This document shows positions 7,175 to 40,000 of a DNA stretch of 41,385 nucleotides, piece after piece. The position numbers and the translations under genes were made by a program. The notes below the pieces were generated by a model. It had not been told where the DNA came from, made no database searches, and saw only the letters and a list, made by a program, of their open reading frames with translations. This DNA is from Macrostomum lignano (Eukaryota): the NCBI GenBank assembly GCA_002269645.1, contig NIVC01004582.1, positions 1 to 41,385 on the forward strand. Reading direction: 5' to 3'. Numbering within the stretch: position 1 is the first letter of the stretch; each line of letters opens with the position of its first letter.

Positions 7175-10100
7175 AAACTACAGAAGCAAGTCGTGTTACT
7201 CGCAGTGAATTTGGTAAGATGCGCGCATAGGGGGGTTTGGGGGGGGGGGGCAGAGCTGCTCAGCGGTTCGTCGGATCGAAATTGGCCAAGAAGGGTTTTT
7301 CATGCTATTTAAACCCCCGATGACCAGTACTCAACACACAGAGAGTGTGCATGTTGGACGATTAGACAGTCAAGGGCCGCTGTACACCCTGTGTGAGCAT
7401 GTGTGTATGAATGTGTATTGGCGCGCTTGCATTTGCTCAGGAGTCAGAAAAGTTTTTAGGGCCTTCGGCGAGGGGTGCCACGAATATCCTACTAAATATT
7501 ATAAAAAGTATCTAATTGTTTCTTTTTAAATATATTTGTTTATAGATTAATTTTTGCTCTAAATTGCAACAAAAACGTACAGGCATCATTCAAGATGTAC
7601 AGGCAGTATCGAAGCTTCCCAGCTGGCAGGGAACATTCGGTGAGCACTTCTCAAAGACACATTAAGTAGACTTTTTTAGTTGTATTTTGCACTTCAACTA
7701 TAACATACAGTTTTGCAAAACTTTTACAATTGCAGCTCATCAAAGGCTACTGCTAGTATTCGCTGATGAGACTACAGCAAAGATGGACAGCTACATTGAA
7801 TTTATGAGCTCTCGTTGCGGCTTTTACACTGAGAAGCTCGCCCTGAACAGTCACCTTGCCGAATCCGAGACCCCGTCTCGAGCACCAGTCAGGCAGATTG
7901 TCTGCCTAGTGATTTTCTCCGCTTCGCAGCCACAGCGCTACATGAAGGCCTACCTAGATTTTCTAAACCAATTTGACGAATCCGTGGATCAGCTACTGCT
8001 GTACTGCAACTTGTCCGAGACAGAGACCCAAATCGATCAGGATCTGCGAAATCAATTCTGCAGCAGTGCTTTTCCTTATCGAAAGTCTAGCATTGCTTAC
8101 ACTTTCGGAACTTCCTATGGAGTCGGACGATTTTTTGATAAATTTAAGAACGATTGCAACTTGAAATGAAATCGTACTGTTGGCCTTTGTGACGTCCTGG
8201 AATCACTTGATATGGACCAGTCGTCTAAACTTTACATTAAAAAACCTAGAAGCGAAAAGTGTTTCTTCCCGCGCGAAATATTTTACCCTTGCAGCTCACA
8301 AGAACTGATCAAAATAGCCGGCATTGAGTCCTTCACCAACCGAGTTGACCCGGATACTCTGGCGTTATACGGTGATTTTATATATCTGAACAGCCGCATA
8401 CAAAAGCCGTACGCCTTGATCGTTCTAAACATCAAACTAGAGAGCGGCAAGACAAACAAGTCAATGCACGCAGACTGGAGGCGCCTTCTTTGGCTGTTTG
8501 ATAAGCTCCAGTTCGAGGTCAAAGACGTTCAAACAGACGCGTCAAGCTGCAGTCAGCTTGAAGAATGCGTGAAGACTTTTGCTGATTCTGAGTTGCACGG
8601 TGACTCTTGCTGCCTGGTTGTGCTCTCCGAAGGCTGGCTAGCAAACAGCTGCATTGGCAACATCAGTAAGAGCATGGCCTTCGGAAAGCTTATCAAGGGT
8701 AAGCCGAGGCTGATCATCATTCAGGAGTACCAACCGAAGTCCTCAGAAGCATCGGATGCTGCGCCGAAGTCGCTCCCCCAATTCCTGCCTGACGCAGTGG
8801 AAGCGATGCGATTGCAGTTCAGAAACGACAAGCCTGAGGTCAGAGTCCATCCGCTAAGCGGAACCGTCTGGTGTCAGTCCGAAGCGTCGGACACCGAAAG
8901 CGACAATGCGACACCGCTGATTGGATCCATCTGCGAGACTTTCATCAATCACTCAGCCATCGAGGATTTGGTTTCGATGATTTCAATCATCAACGAGAGA
9001 CTGCAGGACGCCCCACCCACTTGGTGTGTGCAAACTGCCAAACTTTTCTATGTTGGAAATACTGAGTTCACAGGGAGCGGAAGCGCAAGTAAGTTTGTTT
9101 GAGTTTTTGAAAAAATAAGCAGATTGTTTAATAAAGTTTTCTGTCAAAATTTTCAATTTCAGGCAAGGCTCAATCCGAAAATACCCCTGAAAATCCTGCA
9201 CCTGCAACCGATCCGTTAGCGACTTTGCAGACAATGCAAGGCTTAGCAGCAGAATCGGACAAGCCGCGTCCCATTCTCGATCAAAACAGTAAGTATGAAC
9301 TAAAAATTTGAGACAAAAATCGATTTGGAGGTCCCAAAATTTTTGAAGCTATAAACTTAATGAATTTCAGATCGCCCTGGAGTAGCACTGATTCTCACTG
9401 AAGGCTTGTTCGACAAAGTCCGAGATTATCAAATGTTTCTGGATTTTGCTGGCTTTCAAGTAATCTCGGAACGAATCGATGGTATTAGCGCTTCTTTGAG
9501 AGAAATTGTGACTTCATCGGCCGCTCAAAGCCCGCTAGCAGTTGTGCTGATCGTTAAGAAGCACCAGGCCGGAGCCGGCGTAGATGATGTAATTGCGTGC
9601 ATGTCGGAGACTGCAACCAAGCACGAAAACAGTTCCCTACTCATCTACTTTGAGATACTAGGTACTGATGAGCTGCCCTCTGAGATTCGCTTACCGGATG
9701 AACTGCCAGAGAAGTTCAGCATGGTTTGCTACCAGGGCACTCGAGACCGAATCAATCTCTGCCTTGACTTATTTCTAAAAACGCCGAGGAAGAATCTTAA
9801 AAGCAGTCCAATTGTTGGTTACAATTTTGAGAAGCTACGTACTAGGAAAAAAGAGCCAAAAATGATTTACCAATACAGCGATAGCAATCCTGGTTGGAAG
9901 CTGACACCCAAATGGCCAGAGAGCCGAAATATCAGGGGTGACGACATCATGAAACAGGACTTATTCCGCACAGCCAGTATGCGAAAGAAATGGTTCCCAA
10001 AGAAACCTATTCTACAGAATGTCACTATGCAGAGCAGGGCTCTAATCGTTCAGAATATTGTCTTCAAATCCGGCGAGATCAGATTTGGCACCCAGAACGA

Positions 10101-10800
10101 CTGTCAGAGGCTGACGGAATGTCTTACAGGCTTGGGGTTTCGAGTGTCAATCAGAACGAACCTCACGGCAGCTGAAATCTTGCAAACTGTGCAGCTCTTT
10201 GCTGGTGCCAACGACCACGGCCGCTCCTGCGCCTTGGCAATCATGTCCCACGGATATCTGGGAAAAATTTTGGGATGCGACGAAAGGAATGTGAAAGAAG
10301 CAGATATTCTTGATCAGCTGAGCAAGGGCAGTGGGCTTCAGGGTAGATCAAAGTTTGTTGTGTTTCAGGCGTGCAGGCGATTGGAAGAACCACATTCCAG
10401 CAGCTCAGCAGAGCGATTGATTAGACCCTATCCCGACATGGTGATTGCTCACTGCACCTCCCCAGAGGAGTTCGGTTATCGAAACCGCTTCCAAGGCAGC
10501 TGGTTCGTGCAGAGCCTGTGCTCCGTGCTGAATGAATGCGGAGCCGATGCGGACATCCTATCAGTGATAACTGCGGTGAACTGCATGGTCCTGACCTGCT
10601 TCAATCGGTCCGACTGTAAAGATGAGCGGACTCAGCAGCCGTGGTGGCTGCTGCAAACGAGAGGTGCTTTTGTGCTCGGCAGCGGCACACCAATGAAAGA
10701 GATCGGCGACACCAATCGTAGTGCAGCTGCACCTGCTGGGAGCCGAAAGTGTCGGGCAAGCGTTTGGAAAAAGTTGGAGGCATTCTTCGCGAGGTGGTGA
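7175..10800 (+). CDS. Caspase-family gene 2, about 1000 aa: cryptic domain - dead caspase - linker - cryptic domain - active caspase; one in-frame TGA at 8167-8169
   Basis: Predicted exons 7175-7213, 7583-7639 (weak acceptor), 7736-9088, 9163-9288, 9371-10800. All introns are phase 1 and internal exons are multiples of 3. ORFs 7687-8169 and 8212-9102 are in the same frame across the TGA. The start codon exon was not found. Confidence 0.8.
7375..7452 (+). mobile_element. Diverged SINE-B-like 3' tail inside a gene 2 intron
   Basis: GGCCGCTGTACACCCTGTGTGAG..GGCGCGCTTGC..CTCAGGAGTC resembles 5772-5880 (rc) and 22265-22350. Confidence 0.5.
8212..9088 (+). CDS. Catalytically dead caspase domain of gene 2
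   Basis: Caspase pattern ALIV..D..RL...F..L.FEV..HGDSCCLVVLS..KPRLIII..EDLVSM..IN..W.VQT.K.FY, but SHG is replaced by SEG and QACxG by QEYQP. Confidence 0.8.
9371..10800 (+). CDS. Last exon of gene 2: cryptic domain plus catalytically intact caspase
   Basis: IRFGTQND, ALAIMSHG, FVVFQACRR, p10 PDMVIAHCTSP..GYRN..GSWFVQSLC..QQP. Confidence 0.92.
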
Positions 10801-11525: not shown

Positions 11526-12259
11526 TCATTATATTTCGTATTATTTGAGACATTGAGCCAGTTGGAACAATCTCTAAGCGAAACTGACCTTTTATGTGTG
11601 CGTGAAGTGCAACGAAAAAGTGACCTCTTATTATTTTGGGGTGACACATCCAGTGTTTTTGGGATCGTACGCTAATTGTATCGATCTAATACAACAGGTG
11701 ATATGCAACAACTTCTTTTTTATTATTTTTTTTTATCTGATTATTTTAAAGCCTAATAAAACTGAAGCATGACAAAACTAACAAGAAAACTGTAAACTGT
11801 AAACAAGTGAACTGAAGCACTGTAACTTCCTGTACGTCGTATTTCATTGGCTCGAATTTGAGCGAGAACTTTAAACATTGTCAGATACTGTTGAATTTTT
11901 TTAATGCTACGAGAGTACGATTTAGTAGTCTGACTAATACTCTCTTATCTAGCGATGGCGAATAACTATTTTTATTGTCTTTAAAAATTCTAAATAGACT
12001 GGTACCTACATATTTACAGGCTTCATGTTGTATCAGATACACTTCAGTGTAAAAACTATAGTCTCTAATTCTCAGTGCTGTGTCATTGCAATGTTTCGCA
12101 AATTTGCGGCTTCTTTGCCAACGAGTATCTAATTGCTCAAGGACAGGCTGTCGGATATTTGTTTAAGTTTCCTAGCTCGTACATACAATGGCTTAAAACA
12201 CGCAAGAAAAAGTACGACCTTATCTTCATGGCGGGACTTGTACTTTTAATTCCCTCTAT

Positions 12260-13054
<795 letters not shown>

Positions 13055-13547
13055 GGCTATGCCAGCATTTTGTCATAGATAGATAGATTTGTCTGATGCA
13101 TTAAGTTAGTAATTGCTTTCCCGCTGCACTCTCATATTTCAAAAATAAAAAGTAAGCTAAAAAAAGTTTTCACCGTGTTTCGCAGAACTGATGAAATAGT
13201 AAATTCGGGATAGTCCGTTTATATTAAGTTTGATAGTTAAATAAAAACGGGATAGCAACGTGTCCCTAGATAAAGAAATGATAATCGACGGGGTTTCTAA
13301 TATATAATGACGGCTGACTTGGAGAGGAAAAAGGTTATTGTTACACACTTTTTAACAACTACGCTCGTATTAGTCACAATCTGAGAGCCGATTTTCGTTC
13401 AAATAAATAACATGCTTTGAATTTGAACTCAAGAAGATTCTATCGTAATGTAGAACAGTTTAGAGAAGACGGCAATATAGGATCTTGAAACAGCAAATAT
13501 TTGATACTGAGCATAAATAGCTTTACTGCATTCAACCAGTTTTTCTT

Positions 13548-15217
13548 CTATAAGTGATTCTCCGACACCTCTCCGGAGAGAGGAATTCGGCTTGACTTGG
13601 GCTGCTGTTGATCCACCCGATCCGCCATCGCTTCTGCCGGCCCTTCAAATAGACTCTGCGTACTAACAAGGAAAAACTTCTTATGCGTCTGCACTGTCCA
13701 GCATGGCAGCTGTAGTGACAGAACTTCTCCATTCAGTTCAGGCTGTTTAAATCCGCGAACCATGGCGAAGTTGATCCTGGTGAGCATGGAGACCAGATCC
13801 TCTTTATGGGCGAACTCGTAAAAGGTTGCGCACAGGGCTAAAATGAAGCGACTGCCGTAACTACTTCGAAAAGCGAAGTCCCCAGGCGATGTCGAATGGG
13901 CCACGATCAGCCCGCTCTGCTCAGGCGGCGGCTCAGATCCGCTGGCAGGATTGCCTTGGTGAATGCCCACCTGGATGGCCATCTCCGTCATCATCGCGCA
14001 GACTCTCTCCGAGTTCGCCGCCAGTTTTCCGGCGACGGCCTCGCTCAAATCGATCCGACAGGCTTGAATGAGAACCAGTCTGGGCTTGGCCCTGACACCG
14101 GCGCCTCTGGACATCAGTTGGAGTATTTCAAACTCTTCAACGATGCCCAATTTTTCCCCTCTTCTGTAGTCTGTGCCGCAGATAATGCCGAGGCTACCGT
14201 GCGACATGATAGCCAGGACGCAAGCGTCTCCATGGCTGTCATCGTTGGCAAAGTTTCTCACCGCCTCCCGCATCTGCTCAGCTGTCAGGTTAACCATTTC
14301 TGTCACACTGAACTGCATAAGAGTCAGCACGTGACGCAGGTTCTTAAAATCCATGTAGCTCTCGGGTCGATTCGAGGTTGGAAGCACGAAACTTACGTTA
14401 TGAATTATCAGAGCTTTTTTAGTAGCACGATTTCCAATGTAGTAAACCAGATCGTCAATCGGATTGGGATCAGTCTTCAGTCTCTCGGCTGTTTCGGCGT
14501 CCAGCTGCTTCAGGTGCGATCCGTCGCCAATAATTCTGGCGAACTCCTCCCTGTCCTTCAGCATTTTCACCGGCAGCCGTGGCTGGATGAACTCGCCAGT
14601 CAAGCCATTCTGCGTCTTCAACCTGAACTTATCGAAAACTTCGCTCTCGATTTCGTACTGAATCAACTCGCCGAGACCTCTGCTGTGCCATTTTTTCTTT
14701 TTTAGATCAGCGAGCAGCTGCAGGAAGGTCCTCACTTCATCTCGCATCTTCACGGTGATGCTCATGAGCACCATGTTGCGCAGATTCCTTCGACATTCGT
14801 CTGGCCTCATCAGCTTAACGCAGTCGGCTTTCTCTTCGGAGTACGTGTTGGAGATTCTGCAGAATATAAGCAGCTTCTGCGTTGAGTCATTTGCAGCCAA
14901 AAGCAGTTTGACAATTTCGTCAAGGTCGGCGGGTTCGTCAGACTCAAGCAGTACGACCACAACCAGCTGTTTGGCGTCCTTCGCTACGCCCTCGATTCCA
15001 TTTTTTATGTCGTTAAAATCGGTCGATGGTACATAGTTGACAATGAATCCGCAGCGGTCCAAGAAGCACTCATAGTCGCGAACTTCTAAGCAGCAGTTGA
15101 CTTCCTGATTGTATGTCTGGCTGAATATAACAGCCCTGCATTGTCCACTGAATGAAGGCAGCTGGACGGGTTTCGGCGTTGGCGTTGTTTGCGGACTCGG
15201 TAGCAAAATTGGTTCGA
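13548..15217 (-). CDS. Caspase-family gene 3, main exon: cryptic domain plus catalytically intact caspase
   Basis: Uninterrupted 552-aa frame with NRPESYMD, CVLAIMSHG, PRLVLIQACRI and p10 GLIVAHSTSPG.FAFRSSYGSRFI..EDLVSMLTRIN. Phase-1 acceptor TTTCAG at 15218; upstream exon not identified. Confidence 0.92.
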
Positions 15218-17305: not shown

Positions 17306-17905
17306 TTAATAGGAAAGCGTATTATTCAGTATATCGTTTACTTTGGTTGTCAATCTCGCGAGTGGCCACAGTAAGTGCTGTATCGGCGTAAATTGTGTTG
17401 ATTCGGTGGCGTTGAGGAATTCCAGGTAGATCTCTTCAGTTGTACTCGTAGTATTTATTGGATGCGCCGCATATTGACGTACCAAGTCAAAAAGATATTC
17501 CAAATGGTCTCTCTTGTTGAATGGTATTGGCCATGTTCGTATAGCTGTTGCTAGTTCCTTGGCCGTCATACTGTCCATGGTCTCCTTTGTAAGTTGGATC
17601 TTTGGTAATGTTGTTGTTCCGGCGTAAATTTCCTTAGATATTGGCGCTGCACAAGTTATGCAATGCTTATAGTCGCGGCACCGAATTTTTAGAGCACAAT
17701 CTCGGCAGACCCAGTGTCCGTTGGCGCACATCCTTTGTTGCGGTGTTGTATTGCATACCTGGCTCAGGGTAGGTGGTGCGCGGCATAGCGGGCATTTGTC
17801 TATTCTATCCGTTGTGCAGCAGTTATAGCAGAACTTATGCCCATGCTGACAGTAGACATACTGTTCAGTGTCTTCATAACAAACAATGCACTCGTCGCTA
17901 TCCAT
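17306..17905 (-). CDS. Cargo ORF B: tandem SINA-type RING fingers plus C-terminal R-T-WPIP domain
   Basis: MDSDECIVC..CQHGHKFCYNC..CPLC, then VC..CANGHWVCRDC..CITC (first Cys of finger 2 lost). Likely ATG at 17905 by analogy with ORF A; the open frame extends to 18052. Confidence 0.85.
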   Translation of the reverse strand: MDSDECIVCYEDTEQYVYCQHGHKFCYNCCTTDRIDKCPLCRAPPTLSQVCNTTPQQRMCANGHWVCRDCALKIRCRDYKHCITCAAPISKEIYAGTTTLPKIQLTKETMDSMTAKELATAIRTWPIPFNKRDHLEYLFDLVRQYAAHPINTTSTTEEIYLEFLNATESTQFTPIQHLLWPLARLTTKVNDILNNTLSY

Positions 17906-17978
17906 GTCTGAAAAATGGTCAATGTGATAAGTAATATCTGTGCAAGAATGGTTGCAATATCTGTGGGTGCATGGTATT

Positions 17979-18628
17979 TTAATCAATTTCTGAAGCGGAA
18001 CTATTATAGTCATATGATTCTTGGGGTGGTAATATATAAGACAAGTCCTCATTACGCAGAATGAGTGCAGGTAGAGTTGTACAGAGGATGGGGCATGGGT
18101 GAAAATTCATATCGTTAACAATTTTAAACAGCTTATGTTCAATTTCTTGTGGAGATAATTGCCGGAGTCTAGAACCGTAGGAAGAGGAATAGCGAACGAG
18201 GTATTTACGTGTTTTATGAGCAGCACGTGGTATGGGCCATGATCTGAGGCGGATAATTATAGCATGTGATGGAAAAAGAGCATAAGTGAATGGGTGAAGC
18301 TGTAGGTTGTAGTCCGCTTGAATGCATGCAAGTTTGTTGTTAACTTTAGGTAAAGGGTGGCATCGCATATAGGACACTGACAAATGGAGCGATAAGCAAG
18401 CTTCTTAATACATTGTGTGCACATAAAATGTTGATTTAAGCAATATTGTTCAGTGCGCCAGGAGTTGCATATCATGCATTGACGGAGATTACCTCGACAC
18501 ATAGGGCAATTTTTTAAAGGTTTTTTGTAATGTGCAAGGCTTAAGCAAGAACCACACACCTGGTGTCTATTGACACATATACAAGGTAGTTTACATGAAA
18601 ATTCTCCGAGACAGATAGGACAATCCAT
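17979..18628 (-). CDS. Cargo ORF A: tandem SINA-type RING fingers plus R-S-WPIP domain, split by a -1 frameshift near 18270
   Basis: MDCPIC..CVNRHQVCGSC..CPMC and CMIC..CLNQHFMCTQC..CPIC in 18257-18628. IRLRSWPIP in the -1 frame (17979-18383) matches AIRTWPIP of ORF B. Confidence 0.8.
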
Positions 18629-18759
18629 TGTCGTGTTTGTCGTAGTTGTGTGAGCGTTTGTAGGAAAACAAGGATTTAGTCGCCTCTTACGACAAGCTTG
18701 AGGAAGCTGTAGTGCTATTCTTTATCCCGGTCACTACACGGGGACATGAAGCGAATAAT

Positions 18760-19623
18760 TTAACGAGGTCTTAGGTTGTACGTATGACCGACAGGTGGTG
18801 CGTTTGTTGTTTGTGTTTCGGCGTGTGCAGTGGCAATGTGTTTATTTGTTGTTTTTGTGTGGTCTGGATTTTGTAGGTCTGGGAGGAATGTAGTGTCGTT
18901 AGTGATACGTTTTAGACGTTGAATGTGAACATAGAACTGAGGTTGATGTGGATCCTGGATATTAGCGAGGCGTGCCGTTGTTGCCGATACCAATGCCGTT
19001 ACTCGGAATGGTCCTTTGTATTTAAGTGCGTGTTTATGTGTATGTTGCGCAGGGTAATGTAGGTAAACGATGTCTCCGACTTGTAGAGTAGATGTATGAT
19101 TGCTGGTGGTGACTACTGCCTGTTGATTTTCTAAATTGTGTTTCGCGATTTGCCATGCCAGGTGTAGCTGCGAAGTAAACTTTTGTAGTGTTGTTGGCGT
19201 TTCCACGTACTGAGAAGGTAATAGTTTTTGAACTAGTAGGCTTGGTGGCTGATGCAACGCTTTAATAATTTTGCGGACGTCATCGACGAAAGTAAGGAAG
19301 GATTCCGTCGGACTCATTTTTCGATTATGAAGTTTGTGTAGAAGCACAGATCGATTGGTTCCACATCTGGCGAATTGTGCTCTCAGTTGTGTAACTAAAG
19401 TATGATAGTCTTGCTGTGCGGCGGCATTTAGTTTGCCATAAATTTCTCGAGCAGTACCTTCTAACAGTGGAGGAAGAAGAAGTGCCTTTTCTGGATTTTG
19501 TAGTCCGTATTCGCGAGTTACAAGGTCGAAGTGTTCAATGAAGGTGTTAAAATCTTTATCCATAGTATACATTCCAACAGTTTCCTTGACATCGCGATGC
19601 ACTGTAGGGTTTCTTCGAGCCAT
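18760..19623 (-). CDS. Gag (capsid-like) N-terminus fused in frame to integrase C-terminal (GPY/F) tail
   Basis: FIEHFDLV..YG..KALLLPPLLEGTAREIY..YHTLVTQLRAQF..L..RKM...ESFLTF is a retrotransposon Gag pattern, followed by LQVGDIVYL..KYKGPFRV..VHIQRLK and terminal YNLRPR. ATG at 19623; junction near 19255. Confidence 0.85.
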   Translation of the reverse strand: MARRNPTVHRDVKETVGMYTMDKDFNTFIEHFDLVTREYGLQNPEKALLLPPLLEGTAREIYGKLNAAAQQDYHTLVTQLRAQFARCGTNRSVLLHKLHNRKMSPTESFLTFVDDVRKIIKALHQPPSLLVQKLLPSQYVETPTTLQKFTSQLHLAWQIAKHNLENQQAVVTTSNHTSTLQVGDIVYLHYPAQHTHKHALKYKGPFRVTALVSATTARLANIQDPHQPQFYVHIQRLKRITNDTTFLPDLQNPDHTKTTNKHIATAHAETQTTNAPPVGHTYNLRPR

Positions 19624-19970
19624 ATTTTCAAATGGGAACGGCAAGAGGACCAGATCTGGATCAATTTCCAAAGGATTTTCCAGATTGGACTTTCAAAGTG
19701 GCGAACAAGTGTTGTGTGTGTGTGCAAGCTCTTATTTACTTAAAGGAAGAAAGGAAAATGGACACGGGGGCAAAAAAAATTCTGTGTTGCCTTTACCAAA
19801 GAAAGAAATTGAGATAGGATATTCGCAAATTTAACAAAAGTATAAAACGGTGCACGAAGAATCAAAGGGTCTCTATGCAAACAATGGCGGTTCGGTAAAA
19901 AGTTCAGAAAAATTTGCGCAAAGGACTTGTGTCAAAGTACTTTCAACGATCTAGCCTGGTAGCGCTTGAG

Positions 19971-20906: not shown

Positions 20907-21604
20907 ATACACTACCGCTACAGTTTGACCAGTGCAATTTGCATTCGTTGCGGATGTGTTAGTTAAAGCATTGATAAATAAATCCGAAGATATAGCTACA
21001 CAAATTACCTTCAGGGGCACATTGTAGCTCTACCTGTTATTAGCCATTCTAAAAGAAAAGAGTCGAGTTACAGCTTCTGCATGATACCTTTGGTTTAATT
21101 TGTTTAATCAAATTCCTTAGCCTAATTAAGAAGCTAACGTTATGGAGCTGATTTTTGGGTGCCTTAATACTTAATTTGTTGAAAATTTAACTCAATGAAA
21201 GTACAAGTTAAGGAATATTTGACTTAGATAGAAATATAACTGCTAATTTGATAAATAAATTGCTAAGAGTTCTAGGACATATTGACAGAATCGTTATCTA
21301 GTTGATAACAATTTCTAGAAGCGAAGAATGTTTAAGTAGTTATTGTGACTTCAGCACCGATACATAAGCGAGTACATGTAAGGCTTTTCGTCCAAGTTTG
21401 ATTCACAATTGACTCAAAGTTATCAAAGTGACGTACTTGAATGCAAACTTTCATAATCGGATTTCTTTATTTGATAAAATTGTCTCTTAGCAAAAGTCAA
21501 ATCATAGCAGCGTTATCAATTTTAGAACATAGTCATATTTCGCGCATTGTCCAGCTGTCTTACATTTTTAATTCATTCTCTTTGCATTTTTCATTCTCTT
21601 CTGT

Positions 21605-22187
21605 TTGAAGATTGGGGGCCGGTGATTTTGCAGATTGAGAGCCGGTGGTTTTGAAGATTGAGAGCCGGTGTTTTTGCAGATTGAGAGCCGGTGGTTTTGG
21701 AGATCGGGGGCCGGTGATTTTGGAGATCGGGGGCCGGTGATTTTGGAGATTGAGAGCCGGTGGTTTTGGAGATTGGGGGCCGGTGATTTTGGAGATTGAG
21801 AGCCGGTGGTTTTGGAGATCGGGGGCCGGTGATTTTGGAGATTGAGAGCCGGTGGTTTTGGAGATTGGGGGCCGGTGATTTTGGAGATTGAGAGCCGGTG
21901 GTTTTGGAGATTGGGGGCCGGTGGTTTTGGAGATTGGGCGCTGGTGGTTTTGGAGATTGGGGGCCGGTGATTTTGAAGATTGGGGGCCGGTGGTTTTGGA
22001 GATTGGGCGCTGGTGGTTTTGGAGATTGGGGGCCGGTGATTTTGAAGATTGGGGGCCGGTGGTTTTGGAGATTGGGCGCTGGTGGTTTTGGAGATTGGGG
22101 GCCGGTGATTTTGGAGATTGGGGGCCGGTGGTTTTGGAGATTAGGGGCTGGTGGTTTTGGAGATTGGGGGCTGGTGGTTTTGGAGAT
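21605..22187. repeat. 23-bp minisatellite (GGAGATTGGGGGCCGGTGGTTTT variants), about 25 copies
   Basis: Directly visible; the 23-aa periodicity of the overlapping ORFs equals 3 units. Confidence 0.97.
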
Positions 22188-22231
22188 TTGTTGTTTCACT
22201 ACATGATTTGAATTCGGCTCCTGCAAATGCC

Positions 22232-22370
22232 TAAGTGTACATGCCGAACGATAAATACAGTTAGGGCCACTGTGCACTCACTGTGTGAGTGTGTGCCTGT
22301 GCGTATGACTGCGTACGTATCCGCGCGCTTGTGTGCCTGCTCAGGGGAGTCGGCGAAATGGGCAGTAATT
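22232..22370 (+). mobile_element. 3' portion of SINE family B
   Basis: Aligns by eye with the reverse complement of 5772-5910 (AAGTGTACATGCC..GCCACTGT..CGCGCGCTTG..GGCG(A/G)AATGGGCAGTAAT). Confidence 0.75.
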
Positions 22371-22602: not shown

Positions 22603-23439
22603 CTACGAACGAATGTAGAACTCTCCAGGTGTTTTGTACAGAGCCGGATGAGGAATCAGCGGATACCTCAGCAGGTGGCAGGCAAGTCGCAGCCCATCAA
22701 ACAGCACAGCCTCGCACTGACCAGCTTTGCACCTGGAAGTGCACTCGAGGCTGCTCATGGCGTTGTGAGTCCAGTAGAGCGGGCTGGTGTAGTTTGTGGC
22801 TGTAGTAATTGCGATGTAGTTTCTGGGTGACTCAGCAAAGCTGACGCACTCTCGGCTGCCTGAAAATATTTGTTTTGAAAAGGAACTATATACCAAATAG
22901 CTTTGATTTTCGTTTTGTTCAGAAAAATCGTAACTAACTACCTGAGTACGTCAAGGCGTAAATAGAGTTTCTATCGCGCCCGCCGCACATCTGAGAGCGA
23001 TCCCCAGGCAGGACATGTTGCACTCTTCTTTGCTGGCTGCAAACCCGTACCTGCCGTACGTATTGGAACAAGAGCAACAGCAGGCGTGCTGTACGCCAAA
23101 GTAGCTGAAGCCTCCAAGAGAGCAGACTGACGCACACAACTCCAGAGTCATGTTTCTGTCAAAAACCACAGCCTGCTGGTAAAACATGCTGTGTCCGCCA
23201 AAATAGTGCACACCGAACAGCGCATTCAGATCTCTGGCCCCGGGCTTGTTTGAGTCCACGAAGCATCCAATATAGCTGCTGGTTGCCGGCCTTGCCTCAG
23301 CAGTTTGGCAGGATGTCAGCACTAGCAGGATGAGCAGAGAAGCTGAAGGCAACAAGGCAAGAAGACGAAATGAACATCTTCCATCTTGCTGCTGTTGGAT
23401 TAGCACAACTGTTTTAGTAGCCATCATTCTTCTTTCCAC
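22603..23439 (-). CDS. Secreted WSC-domain + PAN/apple-like protein, copy A (one -1 frameshift near 23005)
   Basis: Signal-peptide-like LLILLVLTSC..AEA; WSC pattern YIGCFVD..MTLELCASVC..YFGVQ..C.CS..YG..CNMSC.G..MCGG..NSIY; phase-1 intron 22941-22860; exon 2 with SSLECTSRCKAGQCEAVLFD..ACHLL. Confidence 0.85.
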
Positions 23440-25899: not shown

Positions 25900-26731
25900 T
25901 CACACTCGAACGTAGAACTCTCCGGTCGTGTTGTACAGATCCGGATAAGGAATCAGCGGATACCTCAACAGGTGACAGGCCCGTCGACGCTCATCAAACA
26001 GCACAGCCTCGCACTGGCCAGCTTTGCACCTGGCGGTGCAATCCAGGCTGCTCATCACGTGGTCAGTCCAGTAGAGCGGGTCGGTGTAGGATGTGGGTGC
26101 CCTAATGGCGATGTAGTTCCTTGGAGCCTTTTTAAAACCGATGCACTTAGGACTTTCTGAAAATGATTTTTTTTTCAGAATAATCAAGTTAACAATACTT
26201 CATAAGATTTTAATAAGGCTCTTAGAATCGTATCATTGGCTGAGTAGAAATGAACCCACCTGGATATGTCAGGGCGTAAACTGAGTTCCTTCCAAAGCCG
26301 CCACATATTTGTGAGTGATTTCCTTTGCATGTCGTGTTGCACCGGCTTTCGCTAGCAGCCATTCCGTACCGGCCGTAGGAATTCGAACAGAAACAGTGGC
26401 AATAGTATTGCAAGCCAAAATACTTGAAGACTCCAAGTGAGCAGATTGCGCTGCACTTCTCGATGGTCATGCTTGAACAGTTGTAGGCCGTGCCATAGTA
26501 TGCGCTCATGGAATGTCCTCCGCTACCGAAGTACGAAACACGGAACAGGCCGTCGAGGTCTCTGGCTCCATAGGTTCCCGAATCAAGGTAGCATCCTAAA
26601 TAGCTGAAATTGGCCGGGCGTCCCTCGGCAGCAGGCGGTGACGTCATCAGGACAGCAACGGCGGCAAGTGACAGAATAGAAGCGAAACACGCTGTACAGG
26701 AGTCTCTGATCAGCTTTTTAGTCGTCGGCAT
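25900..26731 (-). CDS. Secreted WSC-domain + PAN/apple-like protein, copy B (intact)
   Basis: ATG at 26731, hydrophobic signal peptide, WSC pattern YLGCYLD..MTIEKCSAIC..YFGLQY..CFCS..CNTTCKG..ICGG..NSVY; phase-1 intron 26259-26157; exon 2 26156-25900 is highly similar to copy A. Confidence 0.9.
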
Positions 26732-27785
26732 AGCGATGCACGTTTTCAAACGTCAGCTTGGCAATGAGTTTGGACTTTACCTCAAGAAATTGGATTTTTT
26801 TGTCGCTTTTTTATGCTGCTGTACTCGGTGCAGTAGCTCTCTCCAGGAATCATTTTCCTGATTGGCTCAGATCCAAGGACTTCCAGACAATTCCTTTAAC
26901 TGCTAGTGGTCGTCGCTTATACGTTAGAGCCTGCAGCTATAGGTGTCAAAGTCTGGCAAAGTCTTTGCCAAAAGCACAGCAAAGCCATGCATCTTTCTTT
27001 CAAAAAGAGACAAACTTGCGCTCTCTCTGATGTTTTCCGCATCGCATTTTCAGTGCGACTTTGAGAAACCAAAAAGTATGTATGAAAAAAATTGGCTCAT
27101 TAGCTAATATTAGATATACTCAGTAGTATGTCTCTCAAGTAGCATAATTGACACAAAATCAAGCAACTTTTTTGTTTTTATTAAGCTTTGAAATTTGCTT
27201 TTGCAGCTTTTTATTAGATGACGGCATAAGTAGCCATGAGAAAAAATTGAATTTGATAGCAATGATGAGGACGCACTTTTTTCCAAATCCCGCGCTAGCA
27301 CACGGGCTCTAAATTTACTAGCCTACTAACAGTGGGCGATGGGCATTTTTATCCTTTTTCTGTAAATTGTCATAGAATCTATACTAGATATAATGTCTGG
27401 CCATACTAGTAGTCATAATAACATAGGCATTGCTTTTTGGGTCATAAATCATCGCTTTCGAAGCTGGTCTGACAGCCACCTGCGCCTCACTCAGTGTTGA
27501 GACGGGCGCCAGATGGTCTGAGAGGATGCGGGCGGTAGCTTTTTTCTCATCGTTTTGACAGGCCATCAAGATTTATGAGGTCAGAGCCTATTGTTCGGAT
27601 TCACTCAAGCGTGTGACAGCTTTGACAGCTATGCGTTTTACCCCTAAAAGTACTTTGGGATTAGCGATTAGCAATTCCTCTTCATTATCTTCACTTTCTA
27701 TTTAATAAGAGCTTTCTAATGTATATTTTTTCATTAATTTCTGTCAATCCTACGCGAAAAGTCATAAATCATTTTGTTGCGATTT

Positions 27786-30340: not shown

Positions 30341-33300
30341 TTAGCTATCGCGGTCTCTTTGTTGCATAATCACTTCGTGAGCCAGCTGCACGGCGATGAA
30401 GATATCTTTATCGCCTCCTTTGTCTGGGTGATTTTTCAACTGGGCGGCTCTGTAGGCTTCCTGCAGTTCTTCATCAGAGCAGTACTTGTTCACATTTAAT
30501 AGCTGGTAAGCAGCTTCAGTAACAATTTCTTCCAACTGAGCCAACTGCTTCATTTTCAGTGCCTCTGATTCTGCTTGGTCTTCTTCGAAAAACATGCTCC
30601 AAAATTTGTCGCCCAAGTAGTGGTCAGCAAGGACGGAAAAAATAACGATGCCAGCTTCTACGAGTAGCACACATGGGCCACCGATCACCATCAAAGCTAG
30701 AATCGTTCCTGCAACAATTTCAAAAAAACATTATTGCCAAATTTTAAATAGAATTTTAATCTAACACAAATTCCCAAAGGAAGCTCAAGAGTACATGTAG
30801 CGTCAAACTATAAGAGATATGCTCGATAGTATACTCATGCCCCCAATAAGTTGACCCCGGGCTTGTACGATTTGCACCCTAAAATACTCCTTCACACTCA
30901 GATTAAATGAGACTGAGTCTACATGTCCACATGCCTGACGACTATAGAAAGCCAGACCTGCATGTATGAGTACGTGTCTGCGTACATAATTGTGTGCTCA
31001 GGGTGCAGCCTGCGGAATGAACATAACTACTTATCGCATCACTGACTGTGGCTCGACTGCAGTCTCGCTAACTAGCCAAACGAGACTAGCCAAACACATC
31101 AGTTTTTAAAGCCAGACAGTCTCACCTCCAGTAGTGGCTGCCACAGTGCCGCCGAGTCTGGCCAGTTGCTTGTTCCTCTCCGCTTTGCTCAGTAGACTGC
31201 GACGGTAAGCCATTAGAATTTGATACGCAGAGTAGGTGGTTGTTCCGACAAGCATTGCTGGGCCCAAAAATCTTCCGAACCCGGTTAAGGCCTTGCCAAT
31301 CGTGGTGTAGCCAACGCTTTTGCAGATTTGTCCCAAAACATTAGGGGATGTGACAACAGCTCTGATGACGCCGCCTCTGACAGCGCCGAACCCCGCGCTT
31401 CTGGCTATCCTGATGGCGCACTCGGAGCTGCTGATCTCCCCCGCGAGGTACCGGCGGACTTCCTCGTCGCAGGAGATCACGCCGGACAAAACTGCATCTA
31501 CGAAAGCGCCAATAGCAGCTTCTAGACCAATCTTTTTGATAGCGAAGTCCAGACTCTTGGTTCGGACTGAAGGATTCCTTAATCTGGCTTCTAGCCAGCT
31601 CTTGGCTTTGTTTTCAAGATTGGCAACCTCCTTTTCCAATTGATTTCGCCTGGCTTTTTGCTTTTCAAATTCATTGTTTTTTGCTTGAAGATGCCGCGAC
31701 AGACCCTTTTCAAAAGCCTCCCGTCTCTGCTGCTTGGTAAAGTTACTCTTTAGCTTTTCGATATCACTTTGCAATTTGGAAATGTCTTTGTTGCACTGGG
31801 ATAGTTTTTCCCTATCACTGTCTCTTAGGCTATTCATTGTTGACTCCAGTTCCTTGTCCTGAACAGACTTCTGATGTTCTGCTGAATATTCGTCTTGAGT
31901 CCTTAGTTTTTCGCGTTTATTCTTCAACTTTTCAAGACGCTCTTCAGCATTTCTTAGCTCCGTCGGCTTATCAATTAGTTCATATATTTTGTCGTCCAGC
32001 ATCTTTTGGTATTCGGCAATGTTGCCTTCATCCGGAACAAAAACTTGCCGCGCGCTGCCATCATGTTTGACGATGGCTTCGTGCTCTTGCAGGGACTTGA
32101 TTCGAGCCTCGAGTTCAGCAACTTCTTGAATACCTTTTCTGAGCCCGTCGACTTCTTTCTGCAGAGCGTCAATCTTTTTTATTTCGGCTAACTTCGGTTT
32201 TATCTCAGCAAACACTGAGCTCATGGTCTTGTCCTGAAGGAAATCCCGAAATGTTTCCCTGTTCTGATCGAGGAACGCCCGAATGTTATCAACAGTGTCG
32301 GTCTCGATTTCAAAGCCAATCCGGATTCTTGATTCTGCAGCACCTTCAGTGGCATCTGCGATGCCTTTGGGGCCAATCACGGTCACATTGTCCAGCTGCA
32401 GAGCTTCTGGGTAACCTTTAGCTTGTCCAAACTCGCGCTTTGATAGATTGCGGTTCCACTTGGCCCGCCAGTTGTTGATCGTGTCCACAAGGTTTTCAGG
32501 TGTGTCCGTGTACTTGAACTGCACGGCAAAGTACTCGCCAGTGTGGGTGTTTTGAAAGACTGCGTCCGTGTACTCGGGCGTCTTCAATTCGACATGATTC
32601 TTTATGGTGATCTTCCCGTTCCCATCGCCGGCGTGCAGCACTATGGGAGCGCCGCGCCTCTGCACCTCCGCCATCACCTTCGCTATTTGAAGCTCCTCGA
32701 AAGTGATGCCTAGAAGTTCATTCGGATAATAGTTTGGCTTGAGACTTTCTAGACAATTTGGCTTCTTCTTTAGCATTTCCGTTGCTGCCTTGACACCGCC
32801 ATTGCGAAGTTCTTTCACAAACTGCGCCCACGGTTCGTCTGTCTCAAGTGAGCGGGTTGCATTTCGAGCTGCGTTGGATTGATATCCGATGTTTTTAGCG
32901 GCCAATTGAGCACCCTCTTTTTCGGACTTTGCCTGCGTGAAGTTTTTGTATGCTTTTTTAAAGTCCTCCACCTCCTGTAAGCTTATGTCTTTCAACGCTT
33001 GGTCTCTCGATTTAACCCTGCCCGGATCGCACTGAATCCGCAGCTTAATTTTATGAGTAAATGTCGCATCGGCTCTCTTGTCACAGGCGCCGCTAAACAC
33101 AAGATTTACAATTTTCGTCCAAGTTTTCAGCTTGACTTCCTTCGCAACCGAATACTCAATTGTTCCCATTGTGGTAGCGGTGAGTTTGCCTTTAGCAATG
33201 AACACTGGCAGTTTAAGCTCCCGATCGGTGCCATTTAAACTGTATTTAGCCTTGTAGAGTTCCATGACCACCTCACAGCTGACAGACTCTGGTGAGCACA

Positions 33301-33826
33301 GATGGAGCTTCGCCGAGATCGGTTCAACAGACAAGCTGACTGTTGAGGGCAAACAGTTCAGTTCTGACGCCTTGCAATCGACAGTAACGGCGTCATTAGT
33401 TTGAATCAGTTTAGGAAGCAGTGAGTTCATCGACAGCCTGTCGGAGATCTCTTCGTCAAACTGGAGTCCAATCTCGGTGAAGTAGCCGCTTATCCAGTAG
33501 CGATCCAGCTCTGGAAAGTCGCACAGCCAGTGCCTCATTTTTCCTAGCACGTCAGAATTGTCGCCACCTTCAAGAACTTCGCAATCGGTATTTCGTAGGC
33601 CACTCGAAATCAAAGTAAATTTCTTTTTAGAGTTTTTATCTATCGCTTTCGTTAAAAGCTCACTCGCTTCTGCAGTTTGAAAGGCGAATTTATCTCTCAG
33701 TTCACCCAGTATTTGTTTATGCACCTTCTCAATGTCTCTTTCTGGCAGTCGGCAGGGGACCTCCATTGCTTTGGCCATTGCCTGCTTGTAGATGTCTAAG
33801 CCATTCTCCACCGTTGTTGAAGACAT
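30341..33826 (-). CDS. About 1020-aa protein: helical N-terminus, beta-rich domain, PD-(Q)xK nuclease-like motif, coiled coil, Gly-rich hydrophobic helices, C-terminal J-domain
   Basis: Exon 1 33826-31126 (GTGAG donor) and exon 2 30708-30341 (TGCAG acceptor) are phase-1 compatible. J-domain AYQLLNV..EELQEAYR..HPDKGGD..F..VQLAHEVI. Other domain calls are pattern inference. Confidence 0.85.
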
Positions 33827-33862: not shown

Positions 33863-34135
33863 GGGGGGGGGGGTTATGGCCGGTTGGTTAGAGCGTCGGA
33901 CTCAAGACTGAAAGGTCAGGGGGTTCGATTCTCGACCTACTTGGAATAGTTTGTGCCCTTGAGCAAAACACTTTAAAGTAAAGTATATTGCTTCAGTTCA
34001 CCCAGCTATAAAATGGGTGCCAGCATTAGCTGGGGTAATTGAGAGTGAGTGTGGCCGACCCCAGTCCTTGGACTGAACAGCCGTACGCAGCCTTCAGATG
34101 CGCCGCGCAATAGCTGCGGCTGAGCTGTCGGTTGC
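33863..34135 (+). mobile_element. tRNA-derived SINE, family A
   Basis: TGGCCGGTTGGTTAGAGCG (A box) and GGTTCGATTCT (B box); central CCCTTGAGCAAAACACTT..CCCAGCTATAAAATGGG is reminiscent of CORE-type SINE domains; second copy at 11268-11525. Confidence 0.85.
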
Positions 34136-37016: not shown

Positions 37017-40000
37017 TCAATCAGAGAACTCATCCGAGTGATCCATTTGATGCTGATGAGTGCCGGCCGTTCGCGAGTCCAAATTGAGCACGGATCGCAT
37101 AGCAACCGCGCCTTCGTGAGCTTTACGATTTTTGCTGTCCAATCTGATTGCGATCTCGTAGTGCACCAGCGCCTCCTGCTGCTGGCCGCATCGGGAGTGA
37201 CAGTCGCCAAGCAGGCGGTGCAGCTCCGCTGTGGTCTCACCAGCTGGCTCCTGCGACAGGTACATACACATTTGGGATAATTGGGATACTTAAGCGCTGG
37301 AGTACAGTTACTAGGAAGATTCTGGAGGGCCTCAACTTTGATTGGGAGATCATTTAGAATACTAACTGCTAGGGAGTATAGAGGTTGGATTATCCTGTGA
37401 TGGGGAGGATGGATGCTGGATTATCCGGTGATGGGGAGGATGGATGCTGGATTATCCGGTGATGGGGAGGATGGATGCTGGATTATCCGGTGATGGGGAG
37501 GATGGATGCTGGATTATCCGGTGATGGGGAGGATGGATGCTGGATTATCCTGTGATGGGGAGGATGGACGCTGATTATCCTGTGATGGGAGGATTGATGC
37601 TGGATTATCCTGTGATGGGGAGGATGGATGCTGGATTATCTTCACTGTGATGGGGAGATAGGACATCTACTTACCTGCTCAATCTTCTGCACGAGCAGAG
37701 CCTTGGCCTCTGGGTAGCGCTTCTTCTCCATGTACAACTCAGCCAGCACAGAGACGCACTCAGGCAGGCAGCCGCGACCGTTGAACATGGCGAAGGCGTC
37801 GGCGAGGATCTCGATGGCTTTGTCCTTGTTCTCGTAGGATGTGGCGAGGCCGTAGATGCCCAGAGTTCGAGGGTTTCGGCCTGGCAATCATTTTGGATGT
37901 TAAGTTTTTCTTACCTACTGTAAGTAATTTTAGGTTAAACTTTCCTTGAATGGCGATTCTTGATGATGGTTGATTGAGTGGCGATTCTTGATGATGGTTG
38001 ATTGAGTGGGCGATTCTTGATGATGGTTGGTTGAGTCACTTGAGTGGCGATTCTTGATGATGATTGATTGAGTGGCGATTCTTGATGATGGTTGATTGAG
38101 TGGCGATTCTTGATGATGATTGATTGAGTGGCGATTCTTGATGATGATTGATTGAGTGGCGATTCTTGATGATGGTTGATTGAGTGGCGATTCTTGATGA
38201 TGATTGATTGAGTGGCGATTCTTGATGATGATTGATTGAGTGGCGATTCTTGATGATGGTTGGTTGAGTGGCGATTCTTGATGATGGTTGGTTGAGTGGC
38301 GATTCTTGATGATGGTTGATTGAGTGGCGATTCTTGATGATGGTTGGTTGAGTGGCGATTCTTGATGATGGTTGATTGAGTGGCGATTCTTGATGATGAT
38401 TGATTGAGTGGCGATTCTTGATGATGATTGATTGAGTGGCGATTCTTGATGGTGGTTGATTGAGTGGCGATTCTTGATGATGGTTGATTGAGTGGCGATT
38501 CTTGATGATGATTGATTGAGTGGCGATTCTTGATGATGATGATTGAGTGGCGATTCTTGATGGTGGTTGATTGAGTGGCGATTCTTGATGATGGTTGATT
38601 GAGTGGCGATTCTTGATGATGGTTGATTGAGTGGCGATTCTTGATGATGATTGATTGAGTGGCGATTCTTGATGATGATTGATTGAGTGGCGATTCTTGA
38701 TGGTGGTTGATTGAGTGGCGATTCTTGATGATGGTTGATTGAGTGGCGATTCTTGATGATGGTTGATTGAGTGGCGATTCTTGATGATGATTGATTGAGT
38801 GGCGATTCTTGATGATGATTGATTGAGTGGCGATTCTTGATGATGATTGATTGAGTGGCGATTCTTGATGGTGGTTGATTGAGTGGCGATTCTTGATGAT
38901 GGTTGATTGAGTGGCGATTCTTGATGATGGTTGATTGAGTGGCGATTCTTGATGATGATTGATTGAGTGGCGATTCTTGATGATGATTGATTCAGTGGCG
39001 ATTCTTGATGATGATTGATTCAGTGGCGATTCTTGATGATGGTTGATTGAGTGGCGATTCTCAACTATGATTGAATAAACACTCACCCAGCTGTTTAACC
39101 AGCAGTTCAGCTTTAGCAATAGCATTCCTATACTTGTGCCGATTAATATAAGTCCACACAATACCGTGCTGCACTTCAAAGCTGTTAGGCGCCAGCTTCC
39201 TGGCCTCGGTGAAGTAGGACAGAGCATCGCGCTCTTTGCCATTTCTAATGCTTACATAACCGCACACGATGAGGGCGTGCACGGAGTTCGGGCTGATGGT
39301 CAGGGCTTTCTGGGCGAAGAACATTGCCTTGCTGGACCGTTTGTTGCTGTGGTTCAGGTAGCCATAGACTACGTAAGGCTCAGGCCTGTGCTCAGACACC
39401 TGAAAGATATATTAAAACTATTTATGCTACATATCGGCGATTGAAAATCGAAAGCTTTGAAGTCTTAGTCCGATAGAGGTCTTAACACGTTAGAATATGC
39501 ATAACAATACACTGTACAGGCTTGGGGGATTGCTGAGATGTCAAGTCTTGGGGGATTGCTGAGATGTCAAGTCTTGGGGGGGGGGAATTGCTGAGATGTC
39601 AAGTCTTGGGGGGAATTGCTGAGATGTCAAGTCTTGGGGGGAATTGCTGAGATGTCAAGTCTTGGGGGGAATTGCTGAGATGTCAAGTCTTGGGGGGAAT
39701 TGCTGAGATGTCAAGTCTTGGGGGGAATTGCTGAGATGTCAAGTCTTGGGGGAATTGCTGAGATGTCAAGTCTTGGGGGGAATTGCTGAGATGTCAAGTC
39801 TTGGGGGGAATTGCTGAGATGTCAAGTCTTAGGGGGAATTGCTGAGATGTCAAGGCTTGGGGGAATTGCTGAGATGTCAAGCTTGGGGGAATTGCTGAGA
39901 TGTCAAGTCTTGGGGGGAATTGCTGAGATGTCAAGTCTTGGGGGGAATTGCTGAGATGTCAAGTCTTGGGGGAATTGCTGAGATGTCAAGTCTTGGGGGG

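Follow-up and report, generated by a model that had tools for sequence, protein, structure and literature searches.

A Candidate Family of Animal J-Domain Proteins with a Putative Membrane Hairpin and a Predicted PD-(D/E)xK-Like Core, Represented in the Flatworm Macrostomum lignano

Gene Structure and Protein Architecture

We analyzed contig NIVC01004582.1 of the Macrostomum lignano assembly GCA_002269645.1 over its whole length of 41,385 nucleotides (hereafter called the window), and describe here a minus-strand gene whose large product ends in a J-domain. Two open reading frames (ORFs) listed on this strand, one of 906 codons (33826-31106) and the other of 117 codons (30694-30341), are joined in frame when position 31126 is spliced to position 30708, and the reconstructed product has 1022 amino acids. 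Read on the minus strand, the intron donor is GGAG/GTGAGA after 31126, and the acceptor is TTGTTGCAG/GAACG before 30708. The 1022-residue product matches NCBI entry PAA47020.1 from M. lignano from end to end with 100% identity, and therefore the two-exon model is the same as the annotated model. The splicing of these two exons, as proposed in an initial annotation of the window, is thus borne out by the GT-AG intron and by the identity to the database protein.

The protein is already present in public databases, only as a hypothetical or J-domain protein. In UniRef it appears as A0A267DEL5, and the labels attached to it are “hypothetical protein BOX15_Mlig024987g1” and “J domain-containing protein.” The flatworm assembly carries three identical copies of the gene, located on three contigs. 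No tRNA or other RNA family was found in the gene or beside it by ARAGORN or Rfam. An in-frame TAA precedes the ATG by five codons, and homologues from a limpet and an eel have N-termini that align with that of the flatworm protein. These two observations together indicate that the N-terminus is complete, and therefore that no upstream exon, for example one coding for a GTPase domain, is missing from the model.

Full-length alignments reveal a single order of modules that is common to the full-length members of the family to which this protein belongs. An N-terminal region of about 330 amino acids is followed by a core of about 200 amino acids, a charged helical linker of about 100 to 230 amino acids, and a Gly/Ala-rich module of about 180 amino acids. 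After these come a GD(H/Y)FLGDKFW..F..DD motif, a short acidic linker, and a J-domain with an invariant HPD at the extreme C-terminus. DnaJ is the sole significant Pfam family in all eight homologues scanned, is C-terminal in each, and reaches the Pfam cut-off in six of them. The architecture is new as a combination, and its components are known domain types together with two or three modules of unknown fold relationship. Coordinates of these and other features of the window are collected in Table 1.

Table 1. Positions of the J-domain gene, its protein modules, and other protein-coding features in the window (AF2, AlphaFold2; aa, amino acids; nt, nucleotides)
Feature	Positions	Strand	Residues	Details and basis
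Coding exon 1	31126-33826	-	1 to first base of codon 901	2701 nt, ATG at 33826
Spliceosomal intron	30709-31125	-		417 nt, GT...AG, phase 1
Coding exon 2	30341-30708	-	901-1022	Includes TAA stop
N-terminal helical domain	33401-33826	-	1-142	No known family; AF2 predicted local distance difference test (pLDDT) mostly 80-95
Predicted sheet of very long beta-strands	33002-33400	-	143-275	Strands 181-197, 200-233, and 250-266 (AF2)
Predicted long helix and helical lead-in to core	32723-33001	-	276-368	AF2 models
Predicted PD-(D/E)xK (restriction-endonuclease-like) core	32225-32722	-	369-534	Alignment, AF2, Foldseek
Charged helical, coiled-coil-like linker	31547-32224	-	535-760	Differs in length and sequence from one homologue to another
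Gly/Ala-rich hydrophobic and amphipathic helices	31157-31546	-	761-890	Two internal repeats; family alignment, hhalign
Hydrophobic hairpin	30605-31156	-	891-935	LGGTVAATTGGTILALMVIGG-P-CVLLVEAGIVIFSVLADHYL; interrupted by intron
Juxtamembrane motif	to 30581	-	927-943	GD(H/Y)FLGDKFW..F..DD in family, ADHYLGDKFW in flatworm protein; overlaps hairpin end
C-terminal J-domain	30344-30517	-	965-1022	HPD at aa 994-996
Caspase-domain ORF	2384-2854	+		Pfam Peptidase_C14
Caspase-domain ORF	4151-5401	+		Pfam Peptidase_C14
Caspase-domain ORF	8212-9102	+		Pfam Peptidase_C14
Caspase-domain ORF	9406-10800	+		Pfam Peptidase_C14
Caspase-domain ORF	13548-15206	-		Pfam Peptidase_C14
RING-finger ORF and adjoining 303-aa ORF	17306-19671	-		zf-C3HC4_3, E 7e-7; 303-aa ORF without Pfam match
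Two paralogous WSC-domain ORFs	22951-23439, 26222-26749	-		Pfam E 1e-9 and 5e-15

The Core Domain

The initial annotation had read a restriction endonuclease fold into the segment from 32720 to 32300, based on three short motifs whose positions proved correct: LLGITFEE at residues 371 to 378 (32716-32693), YTDAVF at residues 419 to 424 (32572-32555), and FAVQFKY at residues 433 to 439 (32530-32510). Seven residues (G400, D401, G402, G404, D421, Q436, and K438) are invariant in an alignment of 22 core sequences, which share 22 to 47% identity with the query, and three more (F376, E377, and P486) are nearly invariant; the motifs are thus no product of chance. A model of the core produced by AF2 from the family alignment has a pLDDT of 90.1 and a predicted template-modeling score (pTM) of 0.87. 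In this model, lead-in helices precede helix a1 (residues 369-391), which carries E377, and after this helix come a strand (395-399), the G400-D401-G402-x-G404 loop, and a small hairpin. D421 then starts the strand formed by residues 422 to 426, and the next strand (432-437) contains Q436 and is directly followed by K438. The domain is completed by helix a2 (443-463), a further strand (482-484), and additional elements. The resulting alpha-beta-beta-beta-alpha-beta topology is the order seen in PD-(D/E)xK domains, and the conserved residues are modeled at the canonical positions. Thus, a high-confidence model that places a conserved E..D..QxK set on the expected helix and strands agrees with the fold first proposed.

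Structure searches with the core model point in the same direction. When Foldseek was used to search the PDB, 39 of the top 50 matches were PD-(D/E)xK nuclease domains, including those of PfoI, Can2/Card1, CidB ND1-ND2, the R2 endonuclease, BamHI, MunI, AddB, PaqCI, NucS, arenavirus L endonucleases, SwaI, and a splicing endonuclease. Among the predicted viral structures of BFVD, the best match had an E value of 0.0023, and the named matches were mostly Mrr-domain, RecB/Cas4, YqaJ, and “PD-(D/E)XK superfamily” proteins, with one viral Mrr-domain protein matched at a probability of 0.89. Based on the model, we accept that the core is likely to have a restriction-endonuclease-like fold, and that it represents a new, divergent family within the PD-(D/E)xK superfamily.

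The predicted core shares with this superfamily the alpha-beta-beta-beta-alpha-beta arrangement, an acidic residue on helix a1, an Asp that starts a strand, and a Q-x-K that ends the next strand. Its nearest neighbors in fold are Mrr-type, Can2/Card1, type II restriction endonuclease, and RecB/Cas4-type nuclease domains. However, no similarity in sequence between the flatworm core and a described family could be detected, and its first strand is separated from the Asp-bearing strand by an extra beta-hairpin and the invariant GDGxG loop. It also differs in its setting, which is an animal protein that joins the core to a membrane anchor and a J-domain. With regard to Mrr proteins in particular, there is no Pfam Mrr_cat match, and Mrr_cat_2 is matched at E = 0.2 in one of the 22 members. 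The sole connection to these proteins is the resemblance in fold to the viral Mrr-domain protein.

Two other leads for the core were rejected. Weak matches to HslU and DrmE_C were dismissed as noise. A P-loop was ruled out for the GDGNGK loop, given that the Lys varies in the alignment and is followed by neither Ser nor Thr.

Linker, Hairpin, and J-Domain

The linker that follows the core is rich in charged residues (41% K, R, E, or D in residues 535-765) and poor in Pro and Gly, with four Pro residues in all. Its alignment across the family is gappy and its sequence is not conserved. The linker is most safely described as helical, and probably in part as a coiled coil.

The Gly/Ala-rich helices listed in the initial annotation are real and are conserved in the family. 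This module (residues 761-900, positions 31126-31546) is an internal duplication, as judged by aligning one half against the other with hhalign (probability 69%, E 4.4e-5). According to the family alignment, each repeat consists of a hydrophobic helix, a Y..G(E/D)IT..E motif, and an amphipathic helix. Searches for relatives of the module outside the family, and for matches in Pfam or the PDB, returned none.

Adjoining the repeats is a hydrophobic stretch of about 40 to 45 residues with a helix-GGP-helix layout, whose central IGGP is conserved as part of the family motif IGGP.GL.VGAG. Its mean Kyte–Doolittle hydropathy rises to 2.3 over 19 amino acids, and no other segment of the protein is sufficiently hydrophobic to cross a bilayer. 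This conserved hairpin makes membrane association likely, in agreement with an earlier suggestion for this protein. Because the predicted hairpin is of the helix-turn-helix type, both of its flanks would reside on one side of the membrane. Because the N-terminus of the protein has no signal-peptide-like character, both flanks presumably face the cytosol, which would bring the J-domain into contact with Hsc70.

The J-domain, which begins about 30 residues beyond the hairpin, is genuine. Pfam family PF00226 matches residues 967 to 1020 with 37 bits, compared to a curated cut-off of 27.8, and J-domains are the sole matches of the full protein in a PDB sequence search. The HPDKGGD motif noted earlier is present at residues 994 to 1000 (from position 30430). 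HPD is conserved in all aligned relatives, and a J-domain is found in every full-length relative. Features of class A and B proteins are absent, in that DnaJ is the sole Pfam family above its curated cut-off and neither DnaJ_CXXCXGXG nor DnaJ_C is matched.

J-domain proteins give Hsp70 its specificity. Like class C J-proteins that are anchored to membranes, such as DjlA, Tim14/Pam18, Sec63, DNAJB12/14, and auxilin, the flatworm protein has an HPD and is devoid of a Gly/Phe-rich region and a zinc finger. As in those proteins, its J-domain adjoins a membrane-binding element, which suggests that Hsp70 is recruited locally to one dedicated task, and as in Escherichia coli DjlA, the J-domain is located at the extreme C-terminus. 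However, none of these proteins has anything homologous to the flatworm protein beyond the J-domain, and its putative anchor differs from theirs in that it is a hairpin and follows a repeated Gly/Ala-rich module. To our knowledge, none of them contains a nuclease-like domain.

A different precedent is provided by sacsin (DNAJC29), in which the J-domain adjoins a C-terminal HEPN nuclease-like domain. Sacsin is also a large cytosolic animal protein wherein a J-domain is paired with a domain from a nuclease superfamily. However, the fold of that domain is HEPN rather than PD-(D/E)xK, the domain order is different, the other domains all differ, and there is no membrane hairpin. The resemblance is therefore one of analogy only.

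The N-Terminal Region

The AF2 model of the N-terminal region has a pLDDT of 81.5 and consists of the helical domain, the sheet of long strands, and a long helix from residue 283 to residue 328. This region has no match in Pfam or in a profile search of the PDB. A Foldseek search of the PDB with the model gave nothing credible, with a best E value of 0.058, probabilities of at most 0.12, and TM-scores of at most 0.13. Aerolysin-type and Cyt-type pore formers are among the low-ranking matches, and their presence probably reflects only the long strands.

We rejected GBP and atlastin as relatives of this region. A helical N-terminal region is common to these proteins and the flatworm protein, and atlastin likewise has a hairpin membrane anchor near its C-terminus. 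However, the flatworm protein, whose N-terminus is complete, has no GTPase domain and no Pfam GBP match, and neither GBP nor atlastin is among the top 50 Foldseek matches listed. The GBP/atlastin-like N-terminus that had been proposed for it was therefore not borne out.

Relatives and Taxonomic Distribution

When the full-length protein was used in a word-indexed search, only the query itself was matched, probably due to swamping by low-complexity words from the coiled-coil region, and domain-wise searches were therefore used. With the N-terminal 534 amino acids as query, the same type of search returned one relative, 31% identical, on a metagenome contig. For an exhaustive search, a HMMER profile built from the query and this relative was run against the complete set of 1.84 billion representative proteins. 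Only 35 of these proteins are relatives with E < 1e-3.

All of the named relatives are animal proteins, and there is no named prokaryotic relative among the 35 matches. They come from the limpet Lottia gigantea (two loci), the moray eel Gymnothorax javanicus, the octocoral Dendronephthya gigantea, and the hydrozoan Clytia hemisphaerica, and are annotated as “uncharacterized” or “J domain-containing.” Bit scores drop in the order of the species tree, from 443 for Lottia to 248 for the eel, 110 for Dendronephthya, and 64 for Clytia. The distribution is patchy, comprising a flatworm, a limpet, one eel, and two cnidarians.

At least some of the short matches are exon-sized fragments of eukaryotic genes rather than distinct architectures. 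For example, at one homologous locus (L005; GCA_013332895.1, JAAUXW010114179.1, 836-4444), a prokaryote-style gene caller reported a 449-amino acid N-terminal ORF and a 651-amino acid ORF with the core and the J-domain, and these are separated by a canonical intron (AAG/GTAAGT...TTGCAG/). On the contig of another relative, the J-domain is carried by a separate small ORF downstream.

Because the genes have introns and the bit scores follow the species tree, we favor an old metazoan gene that has been lost many times over a recent horizontal arrival. The best overall explanation, which we hold with middling confidence, is that these proteins form a small, previously undescribed family of metazoan class C (type III) J-domain proteins, and that the gene described here is its M. 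lignano member. Our search of the literature revealed no description of the family, of the locus tag, or of an architecture that combines a J-domain, a PD-(D/E)xK domain, and a membrane hairpin.

One viral protein deserves separate consideration. The model of the core alone (residues 322-537, which exclude the J-domain) matches BFVD entry A0A2H4UU33, a 1002-amino acid “J domain-containing protein” of Bodo saltans virus, with a probability of 0.99 and a TM-score (TMq) of 0.47 over 206 columns. Both values are the highest of the whole viral list. Given that the viral protein is similar in length and independently has a J-domain, this model-based match suggests that it may be a giant-virus homologue of the whole architecture. 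A scan of viral contigs with a degenerate family motif gave zero matches, and scans with hidden Markov models (HMMs) of the ORFs at 116 viral loci with an AT-rich YHPDK pattern returned no match below E = 0.04. A literature search on Bodo saltans virus and DnaJ returned nothing relevant. An ancient exchange with giant viruses possibly took place.

Proposed Mechanism and Alternatives

We speculate that the modules of this protein act together as follows. The hairpin would serve as an endomembrane anchor whose two flanks face the cytosol, and the J-domain, positioned at the membrane surface, would locally stimulate cytosolic Hsc70 to hydrolyze ATP. The helical linker could project the nuclease-like domain and the N-terminal domains away from the membrane, and would probably dimerize them. 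The PD-(D/E)xK domain may bind and probably cleave nucleic acid in a metal-dependent manner, with the N-terminal domains as a putative regulatory or recognition part. Hsp70 would most likely remodel the assembly, whether for its activation, its disassembly, or the insertion or extraction of the hydrophobic module. We propose such remodeling because other dedicated membrane J-proteins use Hsp70 on one client. Overall, a hairpin-anchored, Hsp70-recruiting J-protein with a PD-(D/E)xK domain that acts on nucleic acids is a reasonable picture, although one that we hold with no more than even confidence.

A number of observations weigh against this picture. The best PDB match of the core in Foldseek has an E value of 0.038 and a TM-score of about 0.28, such that no single match is significant; indeed, no Foldseek match of the core reaches E < 1e-3, and TM-scores range from 0.2 to 0.47. 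Searches of Pfam, NCBIfam, PADLOC, and PDB profiles provided no sequence link from the core to any nuclease family, and hhalign compared the core to E. coli Mrr with a probability of 0.14%. The (D/E)xK motif has a Gln in the position that is usually acidic, and many members of the PD-(D/E)xK superfamily lack catalytic activity. That the conserved residues converge on one site is read from their secondary-structure positions in the model. No nucleic-acid-binding accessory domain was recognized in the protein. In addition, the coiled coil of about 200 amino acids given in the initial annotation is only partly upheld: the charged, Pro/Gly-poor region is present, but its heptad periodicity is weak (z = 2.3 relative to shuffled sequences) and is absent from residues 600 to 700. 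Finally, the topology, dimerization, and localization of the protein are features that we infer from its predicted modules, and the same applies to nuclease activity of the core and to the gating of such a nuclease by Hsp70.

If the core is not a nuclease, then the PD-(D/E)xK-like domain could be a non-catalytic binding module whose conserved residues serve ligand binding or fold stability. In this case, the protein would chiefly be a membrane-bound, coiled-coil Hsp70 co-chaperone or tether, with a role in organelle shaping, trafficking, or protein quality control. The Gln in the motif, the absence of sequence similarity between the core and active nuclease families, and the occurrence of inactive PD-(D/E)xK domains such as CidB ND1-ND2 among its structural neighbors are all consistent with this possibility, and a long helical linker together with a C-terminal membrane anchor resembles what is found in tethering proteins. 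However, the canonical catalytic positions are occupied by five polar or charged residues (four of them invariant and E377 nearly so) that are kept from cnidarians to a vertebrate even though overall identity is about 25%, and conservation of this kind is more typical of an active site. D-QxK is the active configuration reported for Mrr-type enzymes. We consider a non-catalytic role for the core to be somewhat unlikely.

A more elaborate proposal extends the nuclease interpretation to host–parasite conflict. The protein could be an ancient animal effector of innate immunity or cell death, possibly shared with giant viruses, in which a membrane-anchored PD-(D/E)xK nuclease is restrained or fired by Hsp70 recruited through the J-domain, and in which the N-terminal helical and long-strand domain is the sensor. 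The patchy distribution, the nearby cluster of caspase-domain ORFs, and the match to the Bodo saltans virus protein would then all reflect such conflict. A role in defense or cell death is possible, whereas this entire scenario is improbable in our judgment.

Even less probable is that the protein kills cells as a pore-forming effector. According to this scenario, the Gly/Ala-rich helices, and perhaps the N-terminal sheet of long strands, would insert into membranes, and Hsp70 would either keep the protein soluble or trigger its insertion. A conserved and internally repeated hydrophobic module of 180 amino acids, the low-ranking aerolysin-type and Cyt-type matches, and the presence of five clustered caspase-domain ORFs at a distance of about 15 kb from the gene could be taken as signs of such an activity. 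However, those structural matches are not credible, given the scores listed above and root-mean-square deviations of 20 to 36 Å, and only one segment of the protein is hydrophobic enough to span a bilayer. The C-terminal module also lacks relatives outside the family and matches in Pfam or the PDB. Gene neighborhoods in animals carry little meaning, and for one of the three copies of the gene, the called neighbor in the fetched flank is a TPR gene. The toxin-like, pore-forming character once attributed to the helices is therefore unsupported, as Pfam, PDB-sequence, and homologue searches tie the module to no toxin family.

Lastly, a recent horizontal acquisition of a bacterial or viral gene that now resides in the flatworm genome, as the initial annotation had entertained, would fit the patchy distribution and the match to the Bodo saltans virus protein, but is very unlikely and unsupported given the spliceosomal intron in this gene and in a homologue, the three identical copies in the assembly, the fall of similarity in species-tree order, the animal origin of every named relative among the 35 matches, and the viral-contig scans with the family motif and family HMMs that found nothing.

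If the hairpin-anchored J-protein with a nuclease core is the correct interpretation, and if its nuclease is active, then animals possess a membrane-localized machine that cleaves nucleic acids under the control of a chaperone. More generally, each new J-protein architecture points to a new job for chaperones, and the combination of domains observed here would surprise specialists on chaperones and on nucleases alike. The family is present in cnidarians, in lophotrochozoans, and in at least one fish, with no close relative in the usual model organisms, and tractable systems in which to study it are M. lignano, where RNA interference and transgenesis are available, and Clytia. The two or three sizeable domains that lack recognizable relatives are useful targets for structural genomics.

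Other Features of the Window

The caspase-domain ORFs are located about 15 to 30 kb from the J-domain gene. Three of the five give strong Pfam matches (E 1e-29 to 5e-34), and the other two are weak or partial. Their proximity is suggestive of a neighborhood devoted to cell death or immunity, which counts as weak evidence in an animal genome. A Peptidase_C14 gene is also found near another copy of the J-domain gene (L004).

Each of the two WSC ORFs combines a hydrophobic, signal-peptide-like N-terminal stretch with the WSC carbohydrate-binding domain. The 303-amino acid ORF that adjoins the RING-finger ORF resembles a retroelement gag or integrase tail, and may be the remnant of a transposon.

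Just upstream of the ATG of the J-domain gene, at positions 33880 to 33990 and in the sense of the plus strand, there is a tRNA-like sequence (…GGTTAGAGCGTCGGACTCAAGACTGAAAGGTCAGGGGGTTCGATTCTCGACC…) that resembles a short interspersed nuclear element. It follows a poly-G run, occurs once in the window, and is not called by ARAGORN or Rfam. Elsewhere, three long tandem repeats read as ORFs (12246-13076, 21591-22277, and 37935-39242). The repeat types are a microsatellite-like (SIYL)n tract, a P/Q/N-rich repeat of about 22 amino acids, and a repeat of about 27 amino acids (…IIKNRHSINHHQESPLNQSSSRIATQS…). These tandem repeats coincide with extreme GC skew, which reaches 0.62 to 0.65 in the 1-kb windows from 12001 to 13000 and from 38001 to 39000.

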